Origin: Trichosphaerium sp. ATCC 40318
Lineage: Eukaryota; Protista; Tubulinea
DNA: 40,614 nucleotides
Assembly: GCA_038496445.1 (NCBI GenBank)
Contig: JALMLS010000522.1
Coordinates: 1 to 40,614, forward strand
Direction of reading: 5' to 3'
The notes under the pieces are model-generated. The model did no database searches, had not been told where the DNA came from, and saw only the letters and a program-made list of their open reading frames with translations. The position numbers and the translations under genes are program-made. Of the stretch, positions 12,481 through 40,614 are shown piece by piece. The number at the start of each line of letters is the position of its first letter. Within the stretch, counting starts at the first letter, position 1.

Positions 12481-12632
12481 TTCTAAAAATAAACAAAGTA
12501 ATTATTTTTTAACTTTTTTTCTGAAATCAGATTAATGGGTAAAAAATAATCTTACGCATTTCCCTTCAATATTCTGGGTCTTACAAACTTATGCAAAACT
12601 GTGTGTACTTAACATCAATGACTAAGTTGACT

Positions 12633-13016
12633 AGGCTGTAGTACTGTACTCTTTTTAGGCTGTAGTACTGTACTCTTTTTAGGCTGTAGTACTGTACTCT
12701 TTTTAGGCTGTAGTACTGTACTCTTTTTAGGCTGTAGTACTGTACTCTTTTTAGGCTGTAGTACTGTACTCTTTTTAGGCTGTAGTACTGTACTCTTTTT
12801 AGGCTGTAGTACTGTACTCTTTTTAGGCTGTAGTACTGTACTCTTTTTAGGCTGTAGTACTGTACTCTTTTTAGGCTGTAGTACTGTACTCTTTTTAGGC
12901 TGTAGTACTGTACTCTTTTTAGGTTGTAGTACTGTACACTTTTTAGACTACGGTACTGTACAGTTTTTAGGGTGTGGTACTGTACACTTTTTAGACTGTA
13001 GTACCATACACTTTTT
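12633..13016. repeat. 24-bp tandem minisatellite (AGGCTGTAGTACTGTACTCTTTTT), 12 perfect + 4 degenerate copies
   Basis: Directly visible. Perfect units 12633-12920, degenerate units 12921-13016, no spacers. Confidence 0.97.
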
Positions 13017-15555: not shown

Positions 15556-15703
15556 GCTGAGTTGTAACATCTCCACTTTTAGAAAAAAATTTGCAGAAAG
15601 TAATTACAGTCCAAGTCTAACCTACCAACTATTTCGACAAGAAACTAATAAACAATCACTTTCAAATAGTAACCTTTAGTAAACGAAAGGACTCTTTTTT
15701 TTG

Positions 15704-16078
15704 TTAAAGGTGTATTGTACAAGTGAATACATACCCATTTATTTCATGTGGGCGAGATAAACAAGTGAACACGTGTTTGGCCTTAATCGGTACAAACCAA
15801 AGAAACCAATCCAGACGTGCTAACCCCCTTTGTAAGAAAGATGATGGGTAATAGGTTGTCATCCCATCCTTGCTTTTTAGGCCTAGCTTGCTGCAATAGC
15901 TTTGTTGAGCCTTTACTCCACTTTTTTTGTGAATTTTAGTGCAAATCCAATGTTTTTGTTTATTGTCTAGACTTACGTTAGTTGCTGCACGTGTTGAAGT
16001 TGCGTTCTTCCGCTTTCGCAATTTTTCTTTTGTTTTTGCCAAGATGCTCTCGTAGGAGGCCTCTAATGTGAGATTCAT
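15704..16078 (-). CDS. Hypothetical small protein, probably spliced
   Basis: ATG 16078, MNLTLEASYESILAKTKEKLRKRKNATSTRAATN followed by a GTAAGT donor. Head-to-head (78-bp gap) with the F-box gene at 16157. No recognisable domain. Confidence 0.35.
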   Translation of the reverse strand: MNLTLEASYESILAKTKEKLRKRKNATSTRAATNVSLDNKQKHWICTKIHKKSGVKAQQSYCSKLGLKSKDGMTTYYPSSFLQRGLARLDWFLWFVPIKAKHVFTCLSRPHEINGYVFTCTIHL

Positions 16079-16156
16079 TTTCGATAGTTTTTGAGTCGTT
16101 TTGATGAAGTTTTACTAGCCTAAACGAACTTAAACAAGTAAGCCCAACAAAGCAAA

Positions 16157-17038
16157 ATGTCAGTCAAACGTCCAACCTCAGGCGTAGCTATTTCATCACA
16201 ATCCTTGTTGTCAATACCTGTTGAGGTTCTTTTGATTATTATCGTGAGAAATGGCATTTCATGGCAAGATTTGGCTTCGCTACAACAATCAAACCATTTT
16301 CTGGACGATATGATACGAAACAACTCAGATTATATTTATCGAGGCTTGTACCATCGGAAATGGGGTAAGGGCGCTGAAGAAATAGAGTCTGCTATCCACG
16401 TGATTATTCAGAAAAATTTAATGAAGTATAAACCCATAGCACCACCTACTGCATACAAATTAGAACCAATCACGTGGAAAGAAAAGTACAAAAACAAACT
16501 TGTTCCAAACATCATTGCTGAGTTGACTTGTGATAAAACACGTGTACATAACGGTGATACTATATTATTTACACTCAAACTAGAAAATGTTGGTAACAAA
16601 TCAGAGACCATACAATCCAGAGGTATTGAAGGAGGTTATGGTTTATATGTATGGAATCCTAGAGTATCAGTTTCTTTTTCACATTTAGGAAATTATAGAA
16701 CCATTAACTTTAGTGTTTCAAGCCTACATTACTTAGATATTATACTCAATCCAGGAGATGTACAAACATACACAGAACCTTTTCGTTTTGGTATATCACA
16801 TCCATGCACAAACATTTTCTTCTCTAAGTCACAAGATGATAAACCTTCGGAAATGTTATCTCTTCATAGTAAAAGCTTAGAAGTACGTGTTGCTGATTCT
16901 TCAACACCACATGTATTTCAGCTTCAAGCGTTTTTTCAACTAAACATTTTAAAGAAAAAACGTGAGGAGATGTCAGGCCATTGTTCTTATCTTATTAGTA
17001 GTATTGTAAATCTTACCATGTACAAGCAAAAACAATAA
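16157..17038 (+). CDS. F-box protein with beta-rich (Ig-like) C-terminal domain, intronless
   Basis: LLSIPVEVLLIIIVRNGISWQDLASLQQSNHFLDDMI F-box, WKEKYK, then AELTCDK..VHNGDTILFTLKLENVG...ILNPGDVQTY, a beta-sandwich-like pattern. Confidence 0.8.
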   Translation: MSVKRPTSGVAISSQSLLSIPVEVLLIIIVRNGISWQDLASLQQSNHFLDDMIRNNSDYIYRGLYHRKWGKGAEEIESAIHVIIQKNLMKYKPIAPPTAYKLEPITWKEKYKNKLVPNIIAELTCDKTRVHNGDTILFTLKLENVGNKSETIQSRGIEGGYGLYVWNPRVSVSFSHLGNYRTINFSVSSLHYLDIILNPGDVQTYTEPFRFGISHPCTNIFFSKSQDDKPSEMLSLHSKSLEVRVADSSTPHVFQLQAFFQLNILKKKREEMSGHCSYLISSIVNLTMYKQKQ

Positions 17039-17565
17039 ACTATTAGATTTTCTCTTCATTATTTCCAAATGTAGGACAATTTGTGAATGAAGATGTAACA
17101 TTTCGTGGTTTTGGTTGGCAACAAACCATAGATAATCGCAAGTAGCAATCAAAACCATGGATTTGGAGGGGATTGACTCATTAGCTGTCAACTCATACTA
17201 CGCTAATGTATCATAGTATAAAAGCAAAATACGATTCGGGAAAAGTATCCAAAACAAGCCCTGTAATTGTTTACATTTGTTCAAAAATTATGGGACAACG
17301 AATGCAAGCAAGTACAGGGCTCAATTAGCTTTCGGTCAGGCTTGTAGCTTGGAACAAGAACCCAACCTTCACTCACAACTTGTCAGCCATTGGTGGCGTG
17401 AACATTGGCAAAAAAATGCAAAATGCAAACTGAAAATGTGAACAATCACAGTTTACCTAAAACAGATGCTTTTTTCTCCACATCAACCTTGGATTTTTAA
17501 AAATTCCTGAAATAATCCGTCTTTGCCTGCCCAACCACCTTAAAAACGTTTTTTGATCAACTGAT

Positions 17566-18806
17566 TTATTTGTTTAACTTGCCATAGCTATAATAGCAAC
17601 GTTTTTCATACTTTCCATTCTCTTGCCACTCTTTGTACTCACCATGCAAAGCACCTTCAATATAAAAACAATGTATCTTAACTTGACCATGCCAATACCA
17701 TTCCTTATACTCCTTATTCAGCTTACCATTTACATAGAAACAACGTAGACGTAATCTACCTGTTTTTTTCCATTCTTTGTACTTTCCATTTAAGCGTCCA
17801 TTTACATAAGAGCACTGTACTAGTAAGACACCGTTGTCATACCACTCTTTGTATTTTCCGTTCAACTCACCTTTGACATAAAAGCATTGCTTGTATACGC
17901 TATCACCATTTTCATAGAACTCCTTGTATTGTCCATCAAGTTCACCGCAATCATAAGAGCAATGTACCTTCAATTTACCAACCCAATGCCATTCCTTGTA
18001 CTCTTTATCCAACAGGCCATCAGAAATAAATGCATGTTTGCGTATTTGTCCATCACACGCCCACTCCCTGTACCATCCGTCCAAAGTGCCATTTTTAGAA
18101 TAAAAGCAATGTTTGTGTAGCACGTTATTATAGTGCCACTCCCTGTACTCATCTCTCAAGCAACCTTTGTTATAAAAGCAGTGAAGTACTAAATCACTGT
18201 CACGCCACTTTTTGTATTCTCCGTTTAATTCACCTTGTGAATAAAAGCAACGTTGGAGCAATGTATCTGTACCGCCCATCCACTTCTTATACTCACCATC
18301 TTTTTTGCCATTTGAGTATATGCATTGTTCAAGTGGTAAACCAGATTCATGCCATTTGTTGTACTCTCAAACCAATCGTCCTTTAACATAAAAACAAATC
18401 AAAAACAGTTTGCCATTGTCGTGCCATTCTTTGTACTCTTTGCTTAACTTGTCTCTGACATACGAGCAATGTACTTTCAATTGTCCGTTGCTAAACCAGT
18501 GCTTGCTCTCGCCATGACGTTTGCCATGTTTCCAAGAACATCTACGGAGAAGCTTCCACATGTTGTTTTGACAATGAAGTTGTTTCATCCACACACCATG
18601 CTTTCTGAGCTTAGAATCAAACCTTGTCGTCATCGCCATGTGTTTTGATAACAATGGCCATTTATAAAAAATGTCAGCGGCTAAATCAGTAATACAAAGG
18701 TGTAGCTCCACTGGGAGGTTGTGCAGGTGACTAAAATCAATGCTGTCCTTATGTATCTACTATCACGTTATAAAAATAAAAGATACACGTGTACTACCTT
18801 TTTCAT
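17566..18806 (-). pseudogene. F-box + MORN-variant repeat gene with an internal in-frame TGA
   Basis: Exon 1 ATG-AAA-AAG (18806-18798), GT-AG intron 18797-18757, then LHNLPVELHLCI (F-box-like) and ~24-aa repeats (GxLxGEYKEWxxNGxLxxxCxYxx). ORFs 18367-18711 and 17566-18279 share a frame, separated by one TGA (18369-18367) at a consensus Gly. Confidence 0.75.
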
Positions 18807-19140
18807 AGTTGCGAAAGTAGTATAGTTTAATGATTTTATTCGTTCTCGTTTCAATGATTTGTAACGCGCAATAAGCTTGGCTAAGGTTGTCGTCACTAAC
18901 CAAAGGAGTATCTATTTATGATACTTTCCGTTAAAACATACGCCTGAAAGGTTGTTCACAAATATCGCTCTAAAACTCAGGCGCTTTTACAGTTCATTGA
19001 GACTAAATTTACCGCAACTTTATTCACTTATTCAATGCGTTAATTTTACATACTCTGAGCCGGTAAACTTATTGCAAAAAGGAATAAAAAATCGTTTCGC
19101 TGCATTTGTAGGCTATCACAAAAATAAGCAAAAGGATATT

Positions 19141-19212
19141 AGGCTCCACCCGGAGTCGAACCGGGGTCACATGTACCAAAAACACGTATGATAACCGTTA
19201 CACCATGGAGCC
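19141..19212 (-). tRNA. trnQ: tRNA-Gln(TTG)
   Basis: Reverse complement folds as a cloverleaf: GGCTCCA/TGGAGCC acceptor stem, CGTGT-TT-TTG-GT-ACATG anticodon arm, CCCGG-TTCGACT-CCGGG T arm, discriminator T, TTTT terminator 7 nt downstream. Confidence 0.93.
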
Positions 19213-20021
19213 ATTTGTTGATAATAAAGTGCAGAGACGCAATACCGATCGAAAAAATATGCCTTGCAGAACTACCCAAACCAACGAAATAGTGTAGCCT
19301 TACATATTTTCGCAGTATAACTCCATACTAGTACGTACGAGGGAAAACCAATCACGAGAGTGCTGCAGTTGAACCAAAACAAATAACGCGGTAATTTGTA
19401 AATATTAGTAGCGGTAAGACCGTGATAAGCCATCTGCAAGGAGAATAGGCAAATAACCATCAAATACTACTAAAAACGCTTTGTCGCATTTAGTTCATTC
19501 TAGGCTTACCAGCTGTAAACACGTTTTAGCTTCCTGCTGAGTTTAAGGTGTTTGGCGCGGTGCGTCGGTTTTGTTAAACTACACCCAGTGGTGTCGATAC
19601 GCTCAGAAGTGGATATGTATTCACTAATACCATGAACAATCTATCGTTTAACGGAAACGAGTTTTGGTGGCAAAATCTTTCAACACTGTAGGACATGGCG
19701 CCAGCTGATAACGTGTGTTAGTGCTGGCAGTGTTAGTTTTCCATTGGTACACTGTAAACGAACAAAAATCAAACAATACAAATGGTTTTGGCATCGAAAA
19801 TCTGATTGAATTCAAGCAACTAAAGAAGAGTTAGCAATCTCCCAATACACGCAAGACGTTCTTTGTGATCTCCTTTTATTATCCATGATTGAAAGATATC
19901 AATCAGATGGCCTGGTATCGGACTTTGGTTGAAAAGCGAAAACGACGAAATTACAGTATTTATTTCATTATTTACAAACACAACAAAGTGAACAACAACA
20001 GCGAAAACAACTTCTCTAACA

Positions 20022-20511
20022 ATGAATCAAGCACACCAACGTATCGATAATGCTATAGTAGACTTGTTCGAGAATTTCTCTTCCGAAGCCTATGATAGAT
20101 TGGGCAACGAACTAGAAGCCGAATACGACGTCAATATACCTGCCACAGCTGGAAGGAGTCGCCCTGCTAATCATTCGGCTGAAGCAATACAAGTCATGGA
20201 AGAATATCCTTACAACTCTTTATTTGGAAAAATCAATCATTTGTAATTTTTTGTTTTTTCTTTCTTCTGTTTTAATCTTTATACATCGTTCTCCTTAACT
20301 CTTACTCACTTGGTATACACCTAACATACCTGAGCCATACCCTAAGTATCATGAGAAGCTCGTACTCGCAAGAGACTCTGGTCTAACTGTAGCACAAGTT
20401 AGTACTTGGTTTGCTAACATGCGCGCACGCCGTGGGCACACTAGAACTAAAAAATGCACCGAGGATTCAATAGCAGCCACTCAAACCGAAAGATTAGTCG
20501 ATACTGAATAA
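20022..20511 (+). CDS. TALE homeodomain protein HB1 (B-type); exons 20022-20203 and 20310-20511
   Basis: After removing the AT-AC intron: RPANHSAEAIQVMEDWYTPNIPEPYPKYHEKLVLARDSGLTVAQVSTWFANMRARRGH. PYP loop; collinear with paralogs at 34728-38111. Confidence 0.9.
20204..20309 (+). other. U12-type (minor spliceosome) AT-AC intron, 106 nt
   Basis: 5' site ATATCCTT, branch site TCCTTAAC at 20292-20299, terminal AC at 20308-20309. Removal restores GA|T = Asp and the MEDWYTP motif of the paralogs. Confidence 0.93.
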
Positions 20512-23227: not shown

Positions 23228-24695
23228 ATGGCCGAACAAAAGAATAGCAGCTCTTCCGTCGATAAACAAGTCATCAATCTTGCAACTGGCGTTCGTGATG
23301 CTCTTATCATCACTCCAAAACGAGAAGTTCCAGCTATTGTACCCCAACTGACGAGAGATGAAGTAACGAACAGATTAAAAGGCCAAATACCAAGCGAAAA
23401 AATGCAACAAAAAGTCTATTGGCTTTTCTCACAGTACGTTTCAGCTCTCACCAGACTCGAAGAAATCGTAGAAGAGAAAGTAGCAGAGACCAAAGCAGTA
23501 CTAGAAGAACCTGAATTGGCTCAACTATTTCCAGAAGCTCTGAAAAAGTTGAAGCTACACCTCGTATCTGCAAAGTTCAATGTTGTTCGCCTTCAGTATC
23601 AAGAACGACTTCGCATAGCCATTAACACCGAAATCAAACGTCAAAGTGTGCTTCCTATTCACGTCAGAAGAATTCCTCTTCGTGCTACTCGTATTCTAAC
23701 TAACTGGCTATTCGTACATGCAGCAGTAAGTTACTATTTTTATTTTTACATTTCTCAATCAATCATGATTTTTCGTCAAACGATATGAACGAACTCTTTT
23801 TTCTGATTTTTCTAACGTTTTACCCTAGAACCCTTACCCAACTGAAGCAGAGAGACAAAAGCTTGGGTTCGTATGTGATTTGACTTGGCAAAGAGTAAAG
23901 ACGTGGTTCAACAACAACAGAAATCGTCGCCGTGCTGACTTACAAGCATGGCTTGTTGCTCGCGGTGTCGTTCCTACTCCAATCGCCCAAAGACGTCACC
24001 GGCCAAGCACACCAGTTCGCGTAGCTAATCCTCCACGTCCAGCTCGTCCTGCACGTATTCGTCCTGTTCCAACTGTAACAGCACCTGTACCATCGGCTGC
24101 TACTGCTATTTCTCCTTCTGCTTCTCTCGATGTTCCTCGCACCAAACCTGCCAGACCTAAGCGTACACCTAAACAAAAGAAAACCAAGAAAGTGAAGAAA
24201 CTGGTTGAAATTAAGAAAGAGAAAAAGTATGTCATTGAAGAAAAGCCTCTAGCGCAAATCAACAAACCTCCTGAACCGCAAGCTTTTTCGGGATTACATC
24301 TCCCAGCGATTAACAACACCATCAATATCGTATATCCAATGACAAGTACGTTTTTCGCTTCAGAGTCTTTAGATAAAGAACTAACATCTACTTTTTTAGC
24401 TACTCTTCCACCGGACACCCTCACGGCACCAGTGCTCGAGTTCCATGATGCTTACATTAAAGAAGAAACTAACATTCTCACCGACGGAATGCCACCAAGT
24501 GATGTAGATGAAGAAATGGTCACGTTCCAAGAACCGCAGGAAATGTTGATGGAGCCTTTCGGATTGTTTTCCATCTCGAGAGGAACCAACATCGATACAG
24601 ATGGTATCAACGAAGCTAATGCAGAGGAGCGTGTGGACAGTTTTGTGAATGGCATGGTAGACAACTTTGTATTTCGTCCAAGTGACCGCAATTAA
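23228..24695 (+). CDS. TALE homeodomain protein HB2 (A-type, PBC-like N-terminal domain); introns 23726-23828 and probably 24346-24399
   Basis: RRIPLRATRILTNWLFVHAA|NPYPTEAERQKLGFVCDLTWQRVKTWFNNNRNRRR, then a basic Pro-rich linker and acidic C-terminus. Confidence 0.92.
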
Positions 24696-25275
24696 TCGAA
24701 AGTTGACGTCCTTCTGATGACGTAGTTTACCTTATGTAACTTCAATACAATAAATCTTATTCTTAAACGTTGTTGTTTGTACCTAACCATCTTATGCGCT
24801 ATAAAACTTTTTATTGGTATCACACATAATTAAAGCGCAATTGTGTATGTTAATCAAGGGAGCCAAGATACTCTATGAGAAGTTTGAGGTAAATGTAATT
24901 TCAAATACTCGCTAGAAAAAAAAACACGATGGTGGTTTTGCATCTTTATAGGAAGTACGGAAATAGCTGTCGTTATAAACAGTATATATATATATCGTCA
25001 CACCAGTTTTATCTTACAGAAGCTTAGATTGAAACAATCAGGAGAGCGAGAGGTTCTAATCTATCACAAAACAGTTGTGAAAAAAAGCATGTGATTGATT
25101 TTTTTTTGTATTTTGCTAGAAGTACTCCAAAAACGTTTAGCGTGTAGAGTACCAACTCTTGGAGTTAACTGAATTAGGAAGAATTTGAGTGGTATATTTT
25201 TACTAGTCAAATTCTATTTATTACAACTCGTCCATCATCAACAACTCAGCAACCAATCAACAACGAACAAAAGAT

Positions 25276-28200
25276 ATGGCTGAAAACAAGATTAATAAGC
25301 AAGTATTCGATCTCTCAAAGCAGTTTTGTAAAGCTGTAACTATCACCCCTCAACGACCAATTCCAGCGCTAATTCCGCAACTATCCAAACAAGAAGTATT
25401 CGCAACGTTTGCTGAGCAACTAACCAGTACAATCCTCGTTCAAAAAGCGACTTGGCTTTTCAATCAGTACCTCAACGCTCTTACAAAACTCGAAGTTATT
25501 GTACAGGATAAGGTTGCAGACGTATCATATGAGCTAGCGAAGCCAGTGATAGCAGATTTGATCCCAGTTGAATTGAAAAAAATGAAACTCCACATTGTTT
25601 CAATCAAGTTTAACTGTGTTCGTCTCTCATACCAAGAAAGACTCTTGGCGGCTATTACAACCGCGATTGAACACCAACGTGGGTTACCTACTGGAGTTAG
25701 GAGAATCCCAGCGAACGCTCATAGAATTCTTACGAATTGGCTCTTTGTACATGCTGCAGTACGTATTTTGTACAATAAACCTACCTGTACTGACTTTTCT
25801 CATAGAATCCTTACCCAACCGAAGCAGAAAGACAAAAACTCGCATTTGTATGTGACTTGACATGGGCGAAAGTAAAAACGTGGTTCAACAACAACAGGAA
25901 TCGCCGTCGTGAGGACCTTCAAGCATGGCTTATTGCTCGTGGTGTTACTGCTCCAATCGCTCAAAGACGTCGCGGGCCAAACCCACCAGTTCGCGCAGCT
26001 AATCCACCACGTCCAGTTCGTGCGCCAAGTGCTAGCAACCGCAGAAGAAGAAATCCTGCCACCAATCGTGTTTGTGCTCCTGAACCTGTACCTGTTCGTA
26101 CAACTGCTCAAACCGTAATTCCGTCCATTACTGTTCCCGCACGCACCAAACCTGTGACCGCGAAGCGAACACCTAAACAACGGAAGATAAAAAAGGAGAA
26201 AAAAGTGCAAATGATCAAAAAAGAAAAAAAGACGCTTCATAGAACTAGAAGACGTACTCCACCTGCTAGAACTAGAGGCAATCCACCGAGTGTTACAAAC
26301 AATACCAAGCATAAGGTCATAGAGTCTCCTGTTCCAGTTATCAGTAACGCTGTCAACGCCTTCCCTTTGACAAGTACGTCTGTTTCTAAAGATATTTTGT
26401 CTAATTTATTTTGTAGCTTCCTTTCCTGATATTCTCATGGCACCAGTACTCCCGTTCGATGATTCATTCACCTATGAAGGAACCAATGTACTTACCACTG
26501 GAATGATTCAAACTGACATGGATGAACACATGGGTTACACGACTTCAACTATGTTCCAAAGTCCTCCAGCAGCGATGTTTAAACCTATCGGAGAATTGTC
26601 TGTACCAAGAAACGGTACACATAAGGCCCTTAGCACTGGCTGTGATGAACCTAAGGTTGAAAAGCGTATAGAAACCGGAGAGACAGAAAAATCCCCGGAA
26701 AATAGCGAAAATTCCCAAGGTCGGGATTTTTCGTTGTTTGAGTATTGGTTCTCCCCTAGTTTCAATGCAGTTGGTTATACCAGTAGCCAAGTTGCCAGCG
26801 CTAGTACATGAGTTCAGCAGTGAGCACACAGCGTTCAATGGTCTCTGGTTGTGCAAAAAAAAAGGTAAAAAAGTGCAGGGATTACGATGTGGCGGAGGCA
26901 TCAAAAAATGCAAAGGAGTGCTAGGAGGAAGCAAGTTTTCAAATCCACGGTTTGCCGGTTTAGATGCAATACAGCATTTTAAAATACCTGCCGATAGAAA
27001 TGGTTCACGAGGTAAACTCTGTTCAGAAGTTTTAGAGTGCAAAAGCTGTGATAATTGTACTTGCGAACTAACTTGGGTGATTTACCTCACGGATTTAACT
27101 ACAGCGCACGTCACCTTGAATGGGAATCACAATACTTCCTTTAAAGCCAAACAAAATATATCAAAAGAATATTACGTATACTTAGTGCGCACTCTCGAAA
27201 GTATACTCTCACTAAATAAACGCTAGGTACGTAAACAATTTAATTTAGAGGATGAATTTGGAACAACGAGGAGATATGGACGTGCATCACCAGGGCAGTT
27301 TTTAAACAACACTAGAGTACAAATCATACGGCAACTACAACAAAACAAATTAATTCAAAACCCAACCCTTAAACAGTGGATCCTACCAACACGTCAAGTT
27401 AGTGATTGGCAGCGAGAGAATCGTGCAATAAAACCGTAAGTATCTTTATTGTTTTATTAACATTTACCCTTTAACTAGGACAACAAGCATTATCGATGAA
27501 ATACGAACTACTCTAAATGACCCAACTATCAAACCATACATTTTGTATCCAAGAATTGCAGCGCACATGCCAACCAATGAAAAAAGCAACTTTGTAGCAG
27601 TGTTCACCACTCCAAAATCATTGAAGCTTTTACAACAACATGGCAGTGACATCATTGGACTTGATAGCGTGTATAAATTTAACGCTTATTCATTTCCTAT
27701 CTGGGGAATCGTATGTGAAGAGCCAAAAACCAAGCGAGGTTTACTTTGTGCATTGGCTATTGCATCAAGCAGCAAAGCTGAAAACATAGAGTGCTTTTTA
27801 TCAGCAATAAAAGCAAAATTGAACAGTACGTAAATAAAGGAACTTTATTGCTAACACGTTCATTGTTATAGCTAAAAATCGCGTTTGGAACCCGTACGTT
27901 ATGATTGACAAAGATAATGCAGAACAAGCAGCCCTTGTTAGTGTCGGGTTACGTTATTTGTTATGTACCTTTCATTATCGCCGCACAATAGGCCAATATG
28001 TGCGAACTACGTTCAAAAGCGACTCTGACTCAAAACTATAGTGCGTGTACCTTTCTATGTACTCCAATAACACTGGTGTAGTCAAGAAATAACAGACCAG
28101 CTCCGTCTACTTGAGCGTGCTAGATCAGACGAAAACTTGACCACGCTTGAACAAAGTTTTAAAGAATGGTGCAAAGCAAGGACAACTGTTTGGAAAGAAA

Positions 28201-30715
28201 AGAAAGATGTAATTTCAGGTACCAAAGGGAAAAAAGAAACTTTAGAACCAGCGAATGAATTATACTTGTATTTCAAGCGAAATTGGTACGATTGCTCGTT
28301 TTCACAACACAACTGACTTTTTAGGTTTTCAGAGAGATGGCGAAGCGCTTGGACAGATTTTGGGCGCCCTAATCGCAAAGGACTGTATAACACTAACAAC
28401 AAGGTTGAAACACAGTGGAAACAAATAATGACAGTTTATGGTGCGTACCTCTTGATTTTTTCTCTCTTTTCGCTGATTTGTTTGAGGTTTTAAACAACAC
28501 CGCTATACCATTGCCCGTTGTATGAAAGTGTTCCCAGCCATTTTAGATAACCATTGGGAAACCTACAATGAAATACAGTTAACAGGTGGCTCGCACATTA
28601 AAAAAACAAAAGCAAAGTATACCGACGAGAAAAGATATTCAAACGCTCAAGAGCTTGCAGCAAATGTACGCCGTTTTAATTCTAAAAGATGCAAAACTTA
28701 TTTTTTTTGTAGGGTCATGTAGTAGCTATTGATTTGTCAGATCACGCACACAGGGTATATGACTGTCTATCACAAGCCACACCAAATAAATGGTACTCGA
28801 TTGAAGTACCAGATGGCATCTGTAACTGTCCTTACTACCAAAGCTATGGTACAGAGTGTAAACACATTATCGCTGTTCAGCTATTTGAGGAAAACTTTAC
28901 AGCTGAAACAATCTTGGAAGAGAATGAACTCTACAACTTAACCAGTAAGCAAAGCTTTTTTGTAATGCTCCTAACTATTGTTACAGACAACATACCTGGT
29001 ATACCTGAGCTTGATAAAGCAACAGCTAGAAGCAATGACGCTGAGAAACGTAAACGAGGTAAAGGTAACAGAAGAGGTAAAAAAGGTAAAGGTCAAACTT
29101 TTGAACCAAACGCACCTCCATTGCCGTCATGCCATGCTGCTCCATCACTGCACACAAATCAATCTCTGCTACCGTCTCCTTCACTCTCACCACCTTCATC
29201 GCCTCTCTCCTCCATGAAATCTGCATCAAACTCTCCTCTGCTATTTACATTTTCTCCAGTGGTTCGGTCGGATACATTACCTCCATCATCTCCTGTTTCA
29301 TTTCCTTCAAGTGCTGCTTCATCACCAATGGCATCACTTACATTACAACCAGCATCTCCCATGGCATTGTCAGCAAGCGCAGCCTCCTCACCACCATTAT
29401 CTCCAATGTCTTTATCATTTCTTTCTAACGATTTTCAACCAATTGAAGGTTTACCAAGTCCAACTCAAACGTTTGCACTTTCTCCAACTCCTAATGTAGT
29501 GGTGCCTAGTGTTCTGCCACCTGCAGTGCTACCTTGTGACTTACCAACTGTTTCAGCTTTTCGCGTAACTTGGCAAGGTTAGTACTTTTTTTTGATTTAA
29601 CAATTTGTTTTTGTTTTACTTACCTGTATTAGAACATGGCTTTCAACGTTCTGAAACTGAATTATACAAAGCCATAGCCAACGGTGATGTCAAACCAACA
29701 CGAACCCGTAAACTTACACGCAAAGCGCAAATGTATTTCAAACAATAAAATGAAATAATTTGTTTTTTTGTCTCAAACAAACTTGACGTGCCAAACATGT
29801 AACAGCATACCATACAATTTAAGTTGGGGGTATCAACAGTAAAAGTGTTACACATGCAATCATGTTTAAACACGGAAAAAGGACCAAACAAAAAAAGGTA
29901 GTTTTTGTGTTAGTGTCAAGTCTTAAATCTAGGAGAGTACAATACACTAAAAATGCGTGCTAATAAGCGGAACTTTGTATTTCAAGAAAAGCGATTTTTG
30001 TGCCAACCCCAAATTCTTAAACAACTGCCAAAGCTCTCGGTATGTAATGTAAATATGAATTGCGTACTCTTTCCTGTTTGGTAAGAGGCACAGTGCCGCA
30101 CCTGTCAAAAAAAAAAATTGGGAAAACAGCAAAAAGGCGGGGAAACAAAGAAGGTCTAGAACATGTTCTTAACATATTTTAGGCCAAGCAAAGACCAAGC
30201 GACAAAACCAAACAAAAAAAAATTTGGAAAAACCAGTTTTTTTTTAAAACTATGGTCAGAGGCGTTTTCTACGCACAGAGATAGCGTAGGCATTTAAAAA
30301 AAAAAAAATTGAGTTTGAAAAATATGACAAATTGTCATTTTTAGCTTGCCTCTTTTTTAACAACATAATTTGTGATATTCCCAATATTCCCCTTTGATGC
30401 TCGTAATTTACATAAAAACGTGTACGTTACTCGTTAAACAAAATTACGGCCAACTACCATTGGGAGTTAAATGTACGCTACCGTTAATAACTATATATTA
30501 CAGCAGCGCTTGATAATACGCTCAAAACAATGGAATAATAGCGCATTTCAGACTTGCGTGGACTAATTACAGTACAGTTAACTGCCGACAAAACTACAAG
30601 CAATTAACGAAAAATCCCAGGGTGTGGATTTTTCGTTATTTTCCAGGGATTTTTCTGTCCCTCCATAGAAACCTGTGTGAAAGACGTTGTTGATCTGTTC
30701 GTGTTCCGTACCTGA
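25276..30715 (+). CDS. TALE homeodomain protein HB3 (A-type); last exon interrupted by a MULE. Exons 25276-25758, 25806-26373, 26417-26676, orphan tail 30674-30715
   Basis: ILTNWLFVHAA|NPYPTEAERQKLAFVCDLTWAKVKTWFNNNRNRRR. Excising the element gives EKRIETCVKDVVDLFVFRT*, matching HB2's EERVDSFVNGMVDNFVFRP. With the insertion present the frame ends at 26811. Confidence 0.9.
26677..30664 (+). mobile_element. Mutator/MULE DNA transposon, 3988 bp
   Basis: Imperfect 59-bp TIRs (26677-26735 and 30606-30664; 49/59 identical by hand count), perfect 9-bp TSD ATAGAAACC (26668-26676 and 30665-30673), internal transposase. Confidence 0.96.
26765..29748 (+). CDS. MULE transposase with SWIM zinc finger, about 9 introns
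   Basis: DDE triad contexts IIGLDSVYKFN, VMIDKD and NTNNKVE; Mutator CxxH motif LCTFH; SWIM CNCPYYQSYGTECKHIIAV; N-terminal Cys/His cluster; Ser/Pro-rich tail. Exons join in frame. Confidence 0.9.
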
Positions 30716-31328
30716 AGTTAACGAGCGAACTCACCTCTATCTCTGTAACTGATAAATAAAATAGCAGAAAGCTGTTCAACAAGTTGGTTTCTGTTGTACA
30801 TCGCTAGAGTCTTATCAACGCCAAAATGGCTAGCTTATAGAGTAAGCCTACATTAATTCATGGTTCTTATTTATTCCTTCTACAAAAGCACCCGGTATGC
30901 ACTCTTAGCGCATAGATATACGTTTTTTACTTTTTCTAACGAAGCTCGGAACTTCTCCATAATGGGAGAGCTTTTCAGCTTGTTGAGCATACCTTACGCA
31001 TAAGTAGAGCTAAGAATCAGTGCAAATCTCCTTTAAAGCCTGTTTTAAGTGTTTTCAAACCTTTCCGTTTTTGGAGAATACTTCAGCTTTAAACTGGATT
31101 ATAAAACGTAGCGAGAAGAACGGCAATGATAGAACAGATCAAGTATTAAAAAAACAAAAACAGAATCGAGGTAAACAACTATGCGCAGAATCAATACGAT
31201 CTAGTACTACAACAGCATTGCAAGCGAATGATGTATTTTGTACGCATGTGTTCCTAATTTGGTCTGTTTTTAAGTTATAAAACAGAATTGCGCCAACAAC
31301 TAAACAACAACACCTCCTCTTCAATAAT

Positions 31329-32373
31329 ATGGCCGAACAAAAGGATAACAGCTCTTCCGTCGATAAACAAGTCATCAATCTTGCAAAAGGCGTTCGTGAT
31401 GCTCTTGTTATCACTCAAAAACGCGATGCTCCAGCTATTGTACCTCAGCTTAACAAGGATGACTTTATGTTATCACTTTCTAATCAACTAAAGAGCGAAA
31501 TACTAGTAGAAAAAGTAACTTGGCTTTTCTCACAGTACGTTTCAGCTCTCGCCAAACTCGAAGCAATCGTAGAAGAGAAACTTGAAGAGACCAAAGCAGT
31601 TCTGGAAGAACCTGAATTAGCTCAACTATTTCCACAAAGTTTGAAACTTCTAAAGTTAAACCTCGTATCTGCAAAGTTCAATGTTGTTCGCATTCAGTAT
31701 CAAGAACGACTTCTCGCAGCAGCTACCAAAGTAATTAAACGTCAACAAAATCTTCCTATTGATAACAGTAGAAAGCTTCCGAAGCGTGCTATTCGTATTC
31801 TAACAAACTGGCTATTCGTACACGCAGCAGTAAGTGGAGGTTTTTTATTAATTTATTAGTCATTTTTTTAACATTTTGCAGAATCCTTACCCAACCGAAG
31901 CAGAGAGACAAAAACTCGCATTTGTATGTGACTTGACATGGGGTAAAGTATTAAGGTGGTTCAACAACAACAGGAATCGTCGTCGTGCTGACTTACAAGC
32001 ATGGCTTGAAGCTCGTAAACAAGAAGAGTCTTCTACTGATATTGAACCGAAACCTACGGATGATCCTATGGAGACTGAAGCCATTCCTGCAATAGTACAG
32101 AAAGAGGTAGTACAAGCGATTGTTAAAGGAGAACATCTTCATGCTATCGTTAAAGAAGAAGCCCTTCATGCCATCGTTAAAGAAGAATACGATATAAACG
32201 ATATGTTTCCAGAACTAGATATGTACTATGATCCTTTCGGACAGGTTACAATGTCAAATGATTCTAACATTAATACTGATGGCATAAACCAAACGAACGC
32301 TGTAGAACGCATTGACGATTTCATGGACAAAATAACATACGCATTTGTCTTAGAAAACAGTAAATTCGAATAG
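31329..32373 (+). CDS. TALE homeodomain protein HB4 (A-type); intron 31830-31881
   Basis: RKLPKRAIRILTNWLFVHAA|NPYPTEAERQKLAFVCDLTWGKVLRWFNNNRNRRR. N-terminus nearly identical to HB2; shorter acidic tail. Confidence 0.92.
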
Positions 32374-32967
32374 ATTTGTCAGTACAATAAAAAAAAATTC
32401 AATCACTAGTTTTTTATTTAGTTTACGCGAGAATTAAACCATTACGCGCAGTAATAGCGTAGTAGCTCTTTTTTATCAAAATATAAATTGTAGTTTAAAC
32501 GGCAAATTTGAAAAACAATTCAGGCTTTCTGTGCACTCCGTGAGATAGCAGGCTTTGCTGATAGTCTCACTCACAACAGCAACCAAGCGTACAATGCAAC
32601 ATTTTGGTAGTCTTGACAAACTGAGCGCTAGGTTGAATTGAAAAGCGAAGAATTGTTGTATTAGAACATCATCAGCGCGTTTGTATTAAGTAATGATTGA
32701 TACCATTTGAACGAGTGGAAGAAAACAAGCTTGTCTGGAATATAACTTTTCTGAACTTCCTCGTTTTGGAAAAGATACACAAAGTATGAAAATAGACAAC
32801 TCGCTGTATAAGGTTAAGGTGCTAAAAACAATAGCAAACAATAGATTAGTCCCGTTGAACTCAAATAGATTTTCTTTAGTTCTTGCGTAGGTCCTAATTT
32901 GGGTGATTAAGTTTCAAATTTATCTTGTTTTTAACAGAATTTCCACTCGCTATCAAGATTGAATACT

Positions 32968-34387
32968 ATGTCTTCAGTTGATCAAGAAGTAATCAATCTT
33001 GCTCACCAAACTCGTAATGCACTTGTTATTACTAAAAAACGCGATGTTCCATCGATTGTACCAAGGCTAACAAGAAATGAAGTCATGGATAAACTGGAAG
33101 GTCAACTAACGAGTGAACTACTTGTAGAGAAAGTCTCTTGGCTTTACGCTCAATATATTTCAGCACTAAAAAAGCTTGAAGTAATTGTTGCAAACAAAGT
33201 TAAAGAGACAAAAGACGTACTAGAAGAACCTGAAATGGCTAATTTGTTCCCCGAAGAACTAAAAGACCTTAAATTACACCTTATATCTGTAAAGTTTAAC
33301 GTTGTTCGCGATAATTACCAGGAACGGCTTCGCAACGCCATTACCAGGGAATTAAAACGCCAAAGCGAGGTTCCTGAGGCAACAAAAAGAATTCCAAAGC
33401 GTGCAACACGCATACTTACAAACTGGCTCTTCAAAAACGCGGCAGTACGTTTTAATACCTTATCGTAGACTAACGTCAAATAGAATCCTTACCCAACTGA
33501 AGCGGATATACATAAACTTGGATTTGTATGTGACATGACATGGGCCAAAATTAAGACATGGTTCAACAACAACCGTAATCGCCGCCGTGGAGACTTACAA
33601 AAATGGCTTGTCGATCGTGGTATTATTCCTACTCCTAAAACATCAAAAGCTCGTCGCAAAAAGAACCTTTCCGGTATCCCAGCTGGTAGTGCGAAGCCTC
33701 TGAGAGCTAAACGTAGACCTAAATTAAAAGCCAAGAAAGTGCAAAAAAAGCCAGTAGAAAAGGAAGTTGTTGTTGTTGAACAACCGCCTCCTCAGTTCTT
33801 TCCTGCCACTCAACCATCTCCTGAACCTCAACCTATTCCTATCGATCTCACCAACGAACTTTCTCAACCTCAGGCCGTTCCTATGGATGTAACCAACGAA
33901 CAATCTCAAACTATATTATTCCCTGTCGTACAAAGCCAACCTCCTCAACCTCAATTTACTCCAGCAAATGAAGATCAATTTGATATCCTTTCAATTCCAC
34001 CTTTACCAATGCTCGTGGATGATATTCATCTTGACGGTGCATTGCCAAGTACGTTTTTACGCTTACAAACGGAATGATCTTGTTCTGATAGTTTTTTTAG
34101 CTTCTTATTTTGAAGATACGTTACCACTGCCACTGTTCGGTGTTGACGATATACACAAAAACGAACCTGACTTCTTCAACAACGAGATGTCCGGTTTTGA
34201 TATGGATGAAGACATGGGATACAGTAACATGCCTACTGCATTCCAAGATTCGCCAGACATGATGTTCAATGCTATGGGAGAATTAACTTTACCAAACTTG
34301 TACACTGATGATTTCAACAATAGCCGTATCCCTGAAAAAACAGCAGATCCTTTCTTCTATCATACCATGGATGCTGAATATATTTAG
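32968..34387 (+). CDS. TALE homeodomain protein HB5 (A-type); introns 33445-33483 and 34049-34100
   Basis: KRIPKRATRILTNWLFKNAA|NPYPTEADIHKLGFVCDMTWAKIKTWFNNNRNRRR; P/Q-rich and acidic C-terminus. Confidence 0.92.
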
Positions 34388-34727: not shown

Positions 34728-35261
34728 CTATTTCTCGGTCTTCACACGTTTGAGCGCTCTTTTGTTTCTTTCGGCTTCCATACGGCGTTTATTGTCCTTC
34801 TTGGTATGTCCACGGCGACGACGGGTATTTGTGAACCACACCTTAACTTGAGCAACGCGCAGACCAGCTATTTCAGCGATTTCAATACATTGACCATGAT
34901 TTGGATATGGTAGTGGAATGTGAGGAGTGTACCAATCTTCCATGACTTGAATGGCTCTTGAAACATGGTTTGCTGGACGATTGTGACCATTCGTGTGTGG
35001 AATGGCAGTGTTGTATGTGTTTTCGTAGTGAGTGAGCATTGCATTAATATTGTTGAGGAGACCTTGCTGTTGATCTCTTGCTATCTCTTGCAACAGGTTG
35101 CTAACAATGTTGTCACGTTTTTCAACAATGCTAAGGCACATTTTTGTGAATTTTTCAACGATAGCTGAATCGACGTGTGAGATATCAGGAGCGAATCCAA
35201 TTACTTTATCGCCGTTGATCTCTACTAGCTTCTTGTATGCTTCAAATGCCATGTTGTTCAT
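34728..35261 (-). CDS. TALE homeodomain protein HB6 (B-type), intronless
   Basis: RPANHVSRAIQVMEDWYTPHIPLPYPNHGQCIEIAEIAGLRVAQVKVWFTNTRRRRGH. Confidence 0.93.
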   Translation of the reverse strand: MNNMAFEAYKKLVEINGDKVIGFAPDISHVDSAIVEKFTKMCLSIVEKRDNIVSNLLQEIARDQQQGLLNNINAMLTHYENTYNTAIPHTNGHNRPANHVSRAIQVMEDWYTPHIPLPYPNHGQCIEIAEIAGLRVAQVKVWFTNTRRRRGHTKKDNKRRMEAERNKRALKRVKTEK

Positions 35262-35419: not shown

Positions 35420-35690
35420 ACCTTTTGTTGGAATAGCATCTTTGCGTGTTTTCGTATTAAGTGATCATTACATTGATATGGTTGAGAGGTCCTTGCTCTT
35501 GGTCTGTTGTTATTTCTTCCAAAAGGTTGCCAACAATCTCGTCACGTTTTTCAACAAAGTTGAGACACATGCTATTGAACTCGTCAACAATAGCTGGATT
35601 GAGGTGCGAAACATCAGGAGAATTTCCAATTACTTTGTCACTGTTGATTTCTAGAACCTTCTTATACGCTTCGAATGCCTTCGTGATGAG
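35420..35690 (-). pseudogene. HB7: truncated B-type copy, N-terminal domain only, no homeodomain
   Basis: KAFEAYKKVLEINSDKVIGNSPDVSHLNPAIVDEF...LNHINVMIT*YENT aligns with the HB6/HB8 N-termini. No ATG at the homologous start, premature TAA at 35459-35457, homology ends shortly after. Confidence 0.8.
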
Positions 35691-36063
35691 TTGGAAATTT
35701 GAGCGCCAAATATTTTTTTTACTACCAAATTCAGTAACCAATAAAGAAAGCCATAGATTCGTTGCCAAAAACCAAACATTGGAGAAAAGAAAGATACATA
35801 GCTAAATCAGCTATACCGCAATGATTCTCCGTTACAGTAGTTGATTGTTTCAGCTGGTATCGTTATGTACAATTAAATGGAATTTATGCTGGGTACAAGG
35901 AAGGGACTTTCTCAACGGAAATGGTCTTGTGGCTATTGATATTTATAGTCGTTCTGGACTTACTCATCAACGTATACAAAAAAAAAGAGGGACTCAGGGT
36001 ATTGACAACTAAGGATCGTAGTTTATTGTTATTAATTTAACTCTATAGAAAAGTACATCGGTT

Positions 36064-36597
36064 CTATTGTTCAGTTTTTACACGCTTCGCTTTGCTTTCT
36101 TCTTTTATTGAAGCCAATTTGCGTTTGTTTTCCTTGTGGGTATGTCCACGGCGACGGCGGGCGTTGATAAACCACACTCTGACTTGAGTAACACGTAGTC
36201 CAGCTTGCCTAGCGATTTGAATGTACTGATGATGATCTGGATATGGCTGTGGAATGCGAGGAGTGTACCAATCTTCCATGACTTGAATAGCATCTGCTGA
36301 ATGATTCGCTGGACGATTGTGACCATTTGTGTCAGGTATTGCAACATTGTAGGTGGTTTCGTAGTGGTGAATCATCCCTTGAAGGTCCTTGAGAGGTGAC
36401 TGTTCTTGATCGGTTGTTATCTCTTGCAAAAGGTTGGCAACAATCTTGTCACGTTTTTCAACAAAGTTGAGACATATTTTAGTGAACTCTTCAACGAGAG
36501 CTGAAGCGACGTGTGAGATATCAGGAGCGAATCCAATTACTTTATCGCCGTTGATTTCTACTATCTTCTTGTATGCTTCAAATGCCATGTTGTTCAT
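36064..36597 (-). CDS. TALE homeodomain protein HB8 (B-type), intronless
   Basis: Start MNNMAF by homology with HB6; IQVMEDWYTPRIPQPYPDHHQYIQIARQAGLRVTQVRVWFINARRRRGH. Confidence 0.93.
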   Translation of the reverse strand: MNNMAFEAYKKIVEINGDKVIGFAPDISHVASALVEEFTKICLNFVEKRDKIVANLLQEITTDQEQSPLKDLQGMIHHYETTYNVAIPDTNGHNRPANHSADAIQVMEDWYTPRIPQPYPDHHQYIQIARQAGLRVTQVRVWFINARRRRGHTHKENKRKLASIKEESKAKRVKTEQ

Positions 36598-37571
36598 GTT
36601 GATGATGAGGTGTTGTTGTTGTACTATTGCGATAAAAATGATCGTTTGAGTGTAAAATTTTAGACAACCAAATTCTAATTCAGTGTTGATTGGTTTGCTT
36701 CTATTTTTATATATTTTCCTTTCAATTTGATGGACGAATACTATCAATCTATACACATGATTGATACACTTGTTTGGATCAACAGAGGTGAGAGGTTCGA
36801 AAAAATCAATCATCACTGAACAAAAACAAGCTTCTTTCTTGAGCAGAAACTGAGCTTTCTAGCGTTTACTACCAAGTACTACGTTGATTGTGTTCTTGGT
36901 TTCGTAGTTTAAAGTTTAGCCTAACTCTAACAAATGTTCATTCTAGACAATAACAACATTGTGGCATAGTTCGTAACGCTCAGAAAGTTCACATAGGAAC
37001 TCTATCAATCTGAATAAAACAAAATCTCAAACCAATCACCGCTGATCGAAAACAGCTTTCACTCACAAACTGGAAAACGGAATAATATCAATCTATCGTC
37101 GACCTGATAAGCAGCAATTTTTTGTTTACAGAAACATGCAAAGCGACTGGTACAAAAGAGTCGTAGGTCGAAAAACCGCGTCGGGGGAACAAAATGACTT
37201 CATTTTACACAAAGATAACCTCTTTTAGTCGAAAACAACAAAAAACAGCTTTAGGAGCTCGGTTTACAGTATTGACGGGAAATATGTAACAACAGAACAG
37301 TTTGTAAGGTAATGAGAGCAATCTTGCGTTCTTGCAATTCCAAAACGAGCATGTTTTGAATTTCGGCGTTTTACATCCTTACCCGACCTGGGAAGGATAT
37401 CTACAAGCTACCAGAGGTAGCCGAGAATACATACCGTACATTAAACACTCTCTAATGTACCGAAAAGAGAAATAAAAAAAGAACTCGAGAAAATACAAAT
37501 TAGGCGATTTTTAGTTACAAAATATTCGTTTTTATTAATTTAACAAGGGTTGTAATAGATAAAAGAATACA

Positions 37572-38111
37572 TTATTCGTCTGTATCATTCTTTGCTCGTT
37601 TTGCATTTCTTTTTGCTTTTTCAGCTTCCATTTTACGTTTGAGGTCCTTCCTTGTATGTCCACGGCGACTGCGTGTGTTAGAGAACCATACTCTTACTTG
37701 AGGAATAGATAGCTGCGCATTTTCAGCGATTTCGACTATTTGGTGGCGATCTGGATAAGGTAGTGGAAGATGTAGGGTGTACCAAGATTCCATTACTTGA
37801 ATTGAGGCACGCGAATGAGCCGCTGGGCGAACGTTACCTTTTTCGACAGGTATAGCTGGGTTATAAGTGTTTTCATACTGGCGGAGCATCCCGTTAATGT
37901 CGTTTAGCGGTGATTGTTCTTGGTCTCTTGCTATTTCTTCCAGAAGGTTGGCAACACTTTGTTCACGTTTTTCTACCAAGTCGAGGCAGGAGAAAACGTA
38001 TTTCTCAATGGTGGCTGGGTCAATGTGTGATATATCAGGTGCATCACCAATTACTTTATCACCGTTGATTTCTACTAGTTGCTTGTATGCTTCGAATGCC
38101 GTGGTGTCCAT
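37572..38111 (-). CDS. TALE homeodomain protein HB9 (B-type), intronless
   Basis: Start MDTTAF by homology; IQVMESWYTLHLPLPYPDRHQIVEIAENAQLSIPQVRVWFSNTRSRRGH. Confidence 0.93.
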   Translation of the reverse strand: MDTTAFEAYKQLVEINGDKVIGDAPDISHIDPATIEKYVFSCLDLVEKREQSVANLLEEIARDQEQSPLNDINGMLRQYENTYNPAIPVEKGNVRPAAHSRASIQVMESWYTLHLPLPYPDRHQIVEIAENAQLSIPQVRVWFSNTRSRRGHTRKDLKRKMEAEKAKRNAKRAKNDTDE

Positions 38112-39110: not shown

Positions 39111-39632
39111 TTACTTCTTCTCTTGTTTGGTTTTTTGACGCTTGGCAGCTTCTTTCGCTGCTTCTTCCTCGCGTTTACGCTTAGCTCTTGCTTCCTTGAT
39201 ACGAGTACGCCTGTTCTGAAACCACAAGCTTACTTGCCCTTCCTTTAAACCGCACTCAATAGCGATAATCTTCTTTTCTTGAGCTGTAATATAAGTTTTC
39301 TTGTTGTACCATTCCATTAGATAGTCAACAGTATCTTGTGGATGATTTCTTGGACGTCTTCTGCGAGGTGGAGGAGGTAGGTTTTCACCAGTTGCCTCAT
39401 TGTCGAATTGCTCATACAACACGTCGTCTTGGCCGAGTCCAAGGTTGGCTATCATACTTTTGATCATGTGTTCTGATTCGGCATCGATGGCAGATTGTTC
39501 GTGGATAGATAGTGCGCAAACTTGTTGCACTTCAAGGCTGTTAATGTCACCCAAGGATTCTGCGTCAAATTCAACGGTTTCGGATGTATTCATTGTAACC
39601 ATTTTCTCTATCATTGTAGCTGTTGTTGTCAT
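39111..39632 (-). CDS. Non-TALE (60-aa, Q50) homeodomain protein HB10, intronless
   Basis: RRRPRNHPQDTVDYLMEWYNKKTYITAQEKKIIAIECGLKEGQVSLWFQNRRTR; no three-residue loop extension. Start taken at MTTTAT; an upstream in-frame ATG exists at 39722. Confidence 0.9.
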   Translation of the reverse strand: MTTTATMIEKMVTMNTSETVEFDAESLGDINSLEVQQVCALSIHEQSAIDAESEHMIKSMIANLGLGQDDVLYEQFDNEATGENLPPPPRRRRPRNHPQDTVDYLMEWYNKKTYITAQEKKIIAIECGLKEGQVSLWFQNRRTRIKEARAKRKREEEAAKEAAKRQKTKQEKK

Positions 39633-40232
39633 TTTGTTGAGAGTTGTTGTTTCGACTGTTTGAGTTGTGAATAATGAATTCTTCGAGCAGAAATTTGGCA
39701 AAAATTGGCGTAGGTTCTTCATGTAATGTACTAGAATTTACTATCAATCATACCCTTTTATAGCCTAAATCAATGAAAAATAGGGCATGTGAATAGGAGG
39801 AAAGTGTGTATCCTTTCGGAACGTGGAAGGTAAAAACCAATATTTGAATTTTCCTTGATAGAAAAGTATATCACTCAGAAAGTTGGCCGCTCCACATCAA
39901 CCCAAAATAACTCTATACGATAATATTAACGTGTTTACAGGCATTCAGTAAGTGTGACCACGCTCAATAAACGTAGAAGACAGCAAAACCACAAGAATTG
40001 ACAAATAAATTCTGGGAGATATCAAAACGGCTGAGCTTTGTAAACACGCCGACCTTAAAGAACTACGCACATACACATTTTACACCATTGTTTGAGGCGG
40101 TTTAAAATAAAACCAAATAAACTCAATTTCGCAAAACAAAGCTTGCATTGTACACAATACATAAAATGAGTGTCAAGAAAATGGTTTTTATTAAACTTAC
40201 ACTTTTCCAAATATAGCAAGATTAGAACACTA

Positions 40233-40614
40233 TCAAGTTATCAATCTGTATTCTCTCGTTAATCTAACACATCTAAACCTAACGTAAAAATCATCTTTTG
40301 GTACTTTTCGGAACTTGCAGTGGAAGTACTCCACTTTTGGAACAATGTTTTGTACAGCTGTTCAAAAGCGTCAATTACTTCTTATTGGTTGTTTTAGCGT
40401 TTAGTACGTTGTTTTTCATCTTTTGCTTGTTTTTGTATGCGCCGTTTACGCCTTGCCTTACGGTTGTTAAACCAAGCATTAACCTGCTTGAAGGTAGTCC
40501 TGGTTGCTTCAGCAAGCTGCATCTTTTCTGATTTATTCGGCATTGGATGAGGCAAATGAGCTGTAAACCAATCTTCTAGCACTTTGGTAACTTCAGGAGG
40601 AAACGCACTACCTC
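40233..40614 (-). CDS. Divergent TALE homeodomain protein HB11, 5' end beyond window
   Basis: GSAFPPEVTKVLEDWFTAHLPHPMPNKSEKMQLAEATRTTFKQVNAWFNNRKARR. Ends at 40394 if unspliced, or at 40233 if a GTACTA..AACAG intron is removed. Confidence 0.85.

Follow-up and report, generated by a model that had tools for sequence, protein, structure and literature searches.

A tandem family of TALE homeobox genes in Trichosphaerium encodes a remote PBC-B-like domain

Introduction

Contig JALMLS010000522.1 of Trichosphaerium sp. ATCC 40318 (assembly GCA_038496445.1) spans 40,614 nucleotides (nt), all of which we analyzed and refer to here as the window. Four paralogous homeobox genes of the TALE class lie in tandem on its + strand (23228–34387). 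Each of these A-type genes (A1–A4) encodes a helical N-terminus of ~135 residues followed by a TALE homeodomain. A first-pass annotation, made from the sequence alone, likened a conserved block in this N-terminus to the PBC-B domain and assigned the four genes to the PBX/Extradenticle class. The locus therefore raises two questions: does the resemblance reflect common ancestry or only helical character, and are the A-type genes true members of the PBX/Extradenticle class? Here, we find by sequence comparison that the A-type block is a remote, strongly diverged homolog of PBC-B situated directly before the TALE homeodomain, not a generic coiled coil, and that the genes which carry it are a diverged PBC-B-only offshoot, not canonical PBX/Extradenticle (Exd) orthologs.

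Results

Homology of the A-type N-terminus to PBC-B

The first-exon proteins of A2–A4 are 55–72% identical to that of A1, with 59 columns invariant across the four, which bears out the earlier description of four paralogs with a shared helical block. We combined the four first exons into a query profile and searched 1,835,955,588 representative proteins with HMMER. A single protein matched at an expect value (E) of 0.001 or below: P0001 (E 3.3e-4, 36.8 bits), with profile positions 54–161 aligned to P0001 residues 195–304. P0001 is a PBC and TALE protein (Pfam PBC 80 bits, E 2.4e-22, at residues 91–277, with the homeodomain after it) from an organism more AT-rich than the window, at 31% GC. 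Its family consists of amoebozoan PBC proteins, including annotated proteins of Planoprotostelium, Acanthamoeba and Balamuthia, and nematode PBX proteins are also among its relatives.

Because the linker and homeodomain helix 1 contribute to the P0001 score, we removed the homeodomain on both sides. The homeodomain-free A-type profile still matched P0001 at 21.5–22.5 bits over 78 ungapped residues, and an hhalign comparison against PBC domains taken from 78 proteins gave a probability of 88% (P 2.9e-6, score 41.5). A second hhalign run, for which the homeodomain-free alignments were built separately, returned 85.5% (E 5.7e-6) across 80 ungapped columns at 29% identity. Scores fell to 12.8 ± 2.5 (maximum 23.1) in 200 column shuffles and to 17.7 ± 3.5 (maximum 27.1) in 100 shuffles of 10-column blocks, which preserve local helical periodicity; the reversed A-type alignment scored 26.5.

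The relationship was also found in the opposite direction. A hidden Markov model (HMM) built from PBC domains only scored A1, A3 and A4 at about 23–27 bits and A2 at 12–14 bits, in a common register on the PBC-B half, while the N-termini of the neighboring B-type homeobox proteins described below, a typical homeobox protein and an upstream B-like gene all scored 3 bits or less. Across 53 PBC proteins, 30 PBC-B columns reach 80% conservation or more; at 13 of these the conserved residue also stands in three or all four of the A-type proteins, as do the Tyr at P0001 position 208, Lys-Phe at 254–255 and Ala-Ile at 269–270. The aligned region covers P0001 residues 193–272, the C-terminal part of the Pfam PBC match at 91–277, and ends ~10–15 residues before the homeodomain.

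The first-pass annotation had aligned 71 residues of A4 (its HB5) to PBC-B without gaps, and HMMER and hhalign, run with retrieved PBC sequences, recover the same register. In that fixed ungapped register, the 71-residue A4 block is identical to P0001 at 20 positions (z-score 6.9; none of 5000 shuffles as high) and to a nematode PBC protein at 11 (z-score 4.0; 1 of 5000 shuffles). Across the PBC-B block, A1–A4 are 15–28% identical to PBC proteins.

Any amphipathic helical or coiled-coil segment might produce similarity of this kind, in which case the A-type N-terminus would be a lineage-specific domain unrelated to PBC. Consistent with this idea, the Pfam PBC model (PF03792; gathering score 25 bits), which the first-pass annotation had proposed as a check, has no match at E ≤ 10 in any of the four first-exon proteins, and the reversed profile retains a score of 26.5. 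A protein-atlas feature search likewise returned only unnamed, phage-like helical clusters, with recognition below the reliable level, and a fold search gave only generic helical proteins. A generic helix would not be expected, however, to single out a PBC protein, in collinear position, as its sole significant match among 1.84 billion proteins, nor to exceed all 300 shuffles and the reversed control at 41.5. The B-type N-termini are also helical, yet they reach no more than 3 bits on the same PBC model and a probability of 1.2% in the profile comparison. We regard the generic-helix explanation as already disfavored and improbable. Given the homeodomain-free profile comparisons, the shuffled and reversed controls, the reciprocal HMM and the conserved columns, we assign the A-type block to PBC-B, as the first-pass annotation had suggested.

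The match to P0001 is a distant one. Among the 1.84 billion proteins searched we found no close relatives of the A-type proteins. A profile search of the PDB with the A-type N-terminal domain yielded no relative (best E 0.18), and a word-index protein search with the homeodomain part of A1 yielded none.

Predicted structures are in line with the alignment. An AlphaFold2 model of A1 exon 1, computed from a four-sequence alignment at low confidence (predicted local distance difference test, pLDDT, 61), places helices at residues 57–92 and 103–138. In the P0001 model (53 sequences), PBC-B forms two long, confident helices at residues 184–236 and 241–286. At the alignment offset of 138 the starts of the second helices coincide (A1 103, P0001 241), a predicted correspondence that fits homology and lends it weak support.

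Differences between A-type and canonical PBC proteins

Homology to PBC-B does not by itself make the A-type genes PBX orthologs. If they were canonical PBX/Extradenticle orthologs, they would be expected to pair with MEIS partners as in animals, and they do have in common with PBC proteins the PBC-B homology, a TALE homeodomain, the NPYP motif and the helix-2 Cys. As the first-pass annotation had noted, NPYP and the helix-2 Cys (in the motif FVCD) are present in all four proteins; the PBX-like ATxIL motif that it also listed is found in two of them, with AHRIL and AIRIL in the others. The three-residue loop extension between homeodomain helices 1 and 2 is present, since the spacing of ILxxWLFxxAA-NPYP equals that of the PBC proteins compared, and all four second exons pass Pfam Homeobox_KN. 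When the C-terminal homeodomain half was compared with the PDB, the best TALE match was PBX1/Exd (25–26 bits), above PKNOX1 (22) and MEIS (18), although the non-TALE protein DUX4 scored higher.

Other features set the A-type proteins apart. PBC-A, which binds MEIS/PREP, was not detected: A-type residues 1–58 compared with the PBC-A of 78 PBC proteins gave a probability of 0.2%, and all A-type/PBC alignments begin at about A-type residue 42–55. The A-type recognition helix reads (T/R)WFNNNRNRRR, with Asn50 and Asn54, where the class-typical sequence is NWFGNKRIR(Y/F)K with Gly50; none of the residues W332, F333, G334, N335 and K336 varies among 53 PBC proteins. Canonical PBC proteins of Amoebozoa, by contrast, are well conserved (41–52% identical to one another), and the Pfam PBC model recognizes all 36 of the amoebozoan and nematode PBC domains tested. 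Next to these, proteins that fail Pfam PBC, are without PBC-A and Gly50, and share only 15–28% identity in the PBC-B block are very improbable candidates for canonical orthologs. The proposed PBX/Extradenticle-class membership is not upheld, and neither is the pairing with MEINOX-domain partners that it implied: in animals the route to MEIS is PBC-A (PMC3957477), which the A-type proteins are missing. Most likely, the A-type genes arose from the amoebozoan PBC lineage through duplication, loss of PBC-A and rapid divergence.

Introns within the homeobox were compared as well. The A-type intron is in phase 0 and lies immediately before NPYP. In the Planoprotostelium PBC gene the intron is in phase 0 three codons upstream, and in that of Acanthamoeba it interrupts, in phase 1, the codon of the Leu two residues upstream; the Balamuthia PBC gene and the P0001 gene are intronless.

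Two side observations concern the canonical genes. In Planoprotostelium fungivorum (MDYQ01000275.1, 3001–6527), the annotated canonical PBC gene model has an N-terminal Med10 domain and is possibly a fused model; its tail-to-tail neighbor is a small called gene (102 residues) with a weak homeodomain match, which hints that in another amoebozoan, too, a PBC gene may be in linkage with a second homeobox gene. Separately, three amoebozoan PBC domains from the 36-protein alignment also match Meis_PKNOX_N weakly (best E 3.7e-4), which fits the published idea of a common origin of PBC-A and MEIS-A.

Gene models of A1–A4

The window is AT-rich eukaryotic DNA (~38% GC) with short GTAAGT/GTACGT...TAG introns. 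Each A-type homeobox is interrupted within the TALE loop by such an intron (39–103 nt), with '...NWLF(V/K)(H/N)AA' encoded before it and 'NPYPTEA...' after it. Exon 1 of A1 (23228–23725) is an open reading frame that ends at a GTAAGT donor and encodes the N-terminal helical domain and homeodomain helix 1. Its PBC-B-like block, delimited by hhalign, lies at about nt 23390–23629 (residues 55–134) and scores 25–27 bits with the PBC-only HMM. Exon 2 (23829–24695), behind an acceptor TAG at 23828, encodes the remainder of the TALE homeodomain (NPYP...WFNNNRNRRR; Homeobox_KN 31.7 bits) and a Pro/Lys-rich tail that ends in an acidic C-terminal motif.

A2 is the most diverged paralog: its exon 1 (25276–25758), with the PBC-B-like block at about nt 25435–25662, scores 12–14 bits with the PBC-only HMM in the same register, and its exon 2 runs from 25806 to about 26373 (Homeobox_KN 35.3 bits). 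A3 comprises exon 1 (31329–31829; block at about nt 31491–31733; PBC-only HMM 23–25 bits) and exon 2 (31882–32373; Homeobox_KN 30.4 bits), which encodes the C-terminal part of the homeodomain and a short acidic tail. A4 has exon 1 at 32968–33444 (PBC-only HMM 25–27 bits), with the 71-residue block used in the ungapped identity test at nt 33130–33342 (residues 55–125), and exon 2 from 33484 to about 34048 (Homeobox_KN 25.5 bits). From the reading frame only, A2 and A4 probably each have a third exon behind a GTACGT...TAG intron of 43–52 nt. In A2 the putative intron, a frame-keeping GTACGT...TAG, is at 26374–26416 (43 nt) and exon 3 would end at 26811; in A4 the putative donor GTACGT is at 34049, the acceptor at 34091 or 34100, and exon 3 would end at 34387.

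Selection on the A-type genes

Pairwise ratios of nonsynonymous to synonymous substitution rates (dN/dS) among the A-type genes range from 0.17 to 0.72 where dS is unsaturated and are below 1 throughout; the synonymous sites of A2 are saturated against the other A genes. The A-type genes are therefore old duplicates retained by selection. The highest value, 0.72, belongs to the youngest pair, A1/A3.

PBX-type sites in the homeobox cluster

The A-type genes belong to a dense homeobox cluster that takes up the window from 20 kb onward. The PBX-type octamer TGATTGAT, a tandem PBX1 core recovered in site selections (PMC6426973), occurs in 12 exact copies in the window against 2.06 ± 1.46 expected. 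All twelve lie between 19898 and 39750: there are none in nt 1–19800 and 12 in 19801–40614. Most copies are 20–400 bp upstream of homeobox gene starts, two are in homeobox introns (of the gene at 20 kb and of A1), and the base that follows the octamer is usually A or T. The 7-mers TGATTGA and GATTGAT show the same partition, with no copies in the first half of the window and 22–23 in the second. Because residues 47, 50 and 54 of the A-type homeodomain differ from those of PBX, we advance A-type binding to TGATTGAT as a proposal only.

Neighboring genes

Downstream of A4, on the − strand, are three intact, short B-type TALE genes at 34728–35261 (Homeobox_KN 38 bits), about 36064–36600 and about 37572–38111. 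A fourth, truncated B-type copy (35457–35768, − strand) encodes the N-terminal domain only, its reading frame closed by a stop codon ahead of the homeodomain; it is probably a pseudogene fragment. Upstream of A1, a B-like TALE gene (20022–20470, + strand) has an intron at about 20204–20309. With a typical 60-residue, non-TALE homeobox gene (39111–39722, − strand) and a further TALE homeobox cut by the end of the window (40394–40582, − strand) also present, the cluster holds at least three types of homeobox gene.

B-type proteins are candidate partners of the A-type proteins. Their N-termini are unlike both PBC and the A-type domain. No match to the MEIS or KNOX Pfam models was found in the B-type neighbors at E ≤ 10, so a MEINOX domain is undetectable in them, and a word-index protein search that used the complete B1 protein as query found no relatives.

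Elsewhere in the window, transposase-like open reading frames with a SWIM zinc finger (27543–29582), of a Mutator-type element and with a Ser/Pro-rich tail after them, separate A2 from A3. The first half contains a tubulin C-terminal fragment (5622–6266), an array of F-box and leucine-rich-repeat genes with a 'GVHTI' repeat unit (6586–15555) and a MORN-repeat gene (17566–18279).

Discussion

Taken as a whole, we consider it probable that the A-type genes are tandem TALE duplicates under purifying selection, that their N-terminal block is a PBC-B-derived association module, and that the cluster acts as a self-wired switch. The PBC-B-like block is predicted, for A-type and canonical amoebozoan PBC proteins alike, to fold as a two-helix hairpin. 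This hairpin would serve as a protein-protein association module that joins two homeodomains, either of two A-type proteins or of an A-type protein and a neighboring short B-type protein. The resulting pairs may bind the tandem TGAT-TGAT sites found in such density in the cluster's own promoters, and binding there could create a self-regulating switch, one that perhaps controls a life-cycle or mating transition. There is precedent for such a module: PBC-B, and its second helix especially, mediates the self-association of PBX1, stabilizing its binding to tandem TGATTGAT cores (PMC6426973), and algal proteins pair with their KNOX partners through PBC-B-like domains (PMC6219170).

Several of our observations weigh against this explanation. 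Its database-wide support comes from one protein with a modest E-value, part of whose score derives from the linker and homeodomain helix 1. Pfam PBC does not recognize the domain, and an Arg that is invariant in the PBC-B loop (Arg237) is lost in the A-type proteins. The AlphaFold2 model of A1 exon 1 is of low confidence, and the fold search with it gave only generic helical bacterial proteins. The TALE-loop introns lie near the introns in the PBC genes of Planoprotostelium and Acanthamoeba but not at the same positions, and the base-contacting residues 47, 50 and 54 are not those of PBX.

The same homology could serve a different purpose. The domain might be the self/non-self surface of a multiallelic mating-type locus, in which pairing of A- and B-type proteins across haplotypes triggers diploid development. 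Two homeobox classes are present in one dense cluster, in several lineages TALE pairs control the change between haploid and diploid phases (PMC6219170, PMC8476127), and it is the youngest pair, A1/A3, that has the highest dN/dS, as would suit such a role. The cluster contains no divergent gene pairs, however, with the four A genes in one orientation and the three B genes in the other, and dN/dS stays below 1 throughout; on balance we find this unlikely. An equally tentative extension is that the cluster is a zygote-development or mating-type switch in which A- and B-type proteins pair through the PBC-B-like hairpin, possibly only across haplotypes, and bind TGATTGAT sites in the promoters of the cluster itself. 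If so, it would be an amoebozoan counterpart of green-algal GSP1/GSM1 and mushroom HD1/HD2, and would extend the ancestral haploid-diploid TALE dyad to Amoebozoa with recognizable sequence homology, unlike the enigmatic Mat proteins of Dictyostelium.

Returning to the explanation that we favor, a self-wired cluster of PBC-B-derived TALE proteins, what is new in it needs to be separated from what is not. PBC and PBC-B-like domains outside animals have been published, including a PBC protein of Acanthamoeba (Joo et al, 2018; PMC6219170), and canonical PBC genes occur widely across Amoebozoa, as our search of the P0001 family shows. Since such domains were already known from non-animal lineages, the A-type homology itself is an incremental result. 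Of the non-animal PBC-class expansion put forward in the first-pass annotation, the four-fold PBC-B-like expansion holds, and a non-animal PBC class as such is not new. What is new is a PBC-B-only subfamily, for which the protein search gave no close relative, its four-fold tandem expansion, and its setting in a two-class TALE cluster. Our literature search found no description of such a cluster, nor of a homeobox mating-type locus in Physarum, other myxomycetes or myxomycete-like amoebae; for Amoebozoa, the literature searched recorded nothing beyond canonical PBC/MEIS genes in single copy and the Mat proteins of Dictyostelium, which defy classification.

TALE pairs such as MEIS/PBC, KNOX/BELL and GSM1/GSP1 have been proposed as an ancestral means by which eukaryotes sense that gametes have fused. 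Here, a rapidly evolving PBC-B-only offshoot is present four times beside a second expanded TALE class, amid PBX-type sites. The cluster is a tractable place to ask whether PBC-B alone is a dimerization module, and whether a TALE dyad controls the life cycle of an amoeba.

Among known systems, the A-type domain is closest in sequence to the canonical amoebozoan PBC proteins, namely the P0001 family with the Planoprotostelium 'Pre-B-cell leukemia transcription factor 1', the Acanthamoeba castellanii homeobox protein and the PBX-like protein of Balamuthia. Like the A-type proteins, they have a two-helix PBC-B block right before the TALE homeodomain, with 13 of 30 conserved positions shared. They differ in having PBC-A, Pfam PBC scores of 80 bits or more and the WFGNKRIR sequence with Gly50, none of which is found in A-type proteins, and the tandem expansion is an A-type feature.

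Animal PBX/Extradenticle proteins (PF03792) resemble the A-type proteins in the ungapped register (11 of 71 identities with the nematode protein, z-score 4.0), in being the best TALE homeodomain match in the PDB, and in their tandem core TGATTGAT, which is enriched in the cluster. The A-type proteins depart from them in having no Pfam match, no MEIS-binding PBC-A (PMC3957477), and Asn50 in place of Gly50 (WFNNNRNRR instead of WFGNKRIR). Hox cofactor biology would also be unexpected in an amoeba.

Basidiomycete HD1/HD2 loci offer a parallel in organization, with several copies of two homeobox classes at one locus and N-terminal helical domains thought to mediate pairing. In Trichosphaerium, unlike in those loci, both classes are TALE and there is no divergent-pair orientation.

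The closest concept to the A-type proteins, likened here by description, is that of the PBL (PBC-B-like) TALE proteins of algae and protists (Joo et al, 2018). In PBX-Red, PBX-Glauco and GLX/GSP1, the similarity of the region before the homeodomain is confined to the second half of PBC-B, and this PBL domain is used for heterodimerization with KNOX/MEIS-type partners (PMC6219170). The A-type proteins differ from PBL proteins in that their candidate B-type partners are without a detectable MEINOX domain, and in that their genes form a multi-copy cluster.

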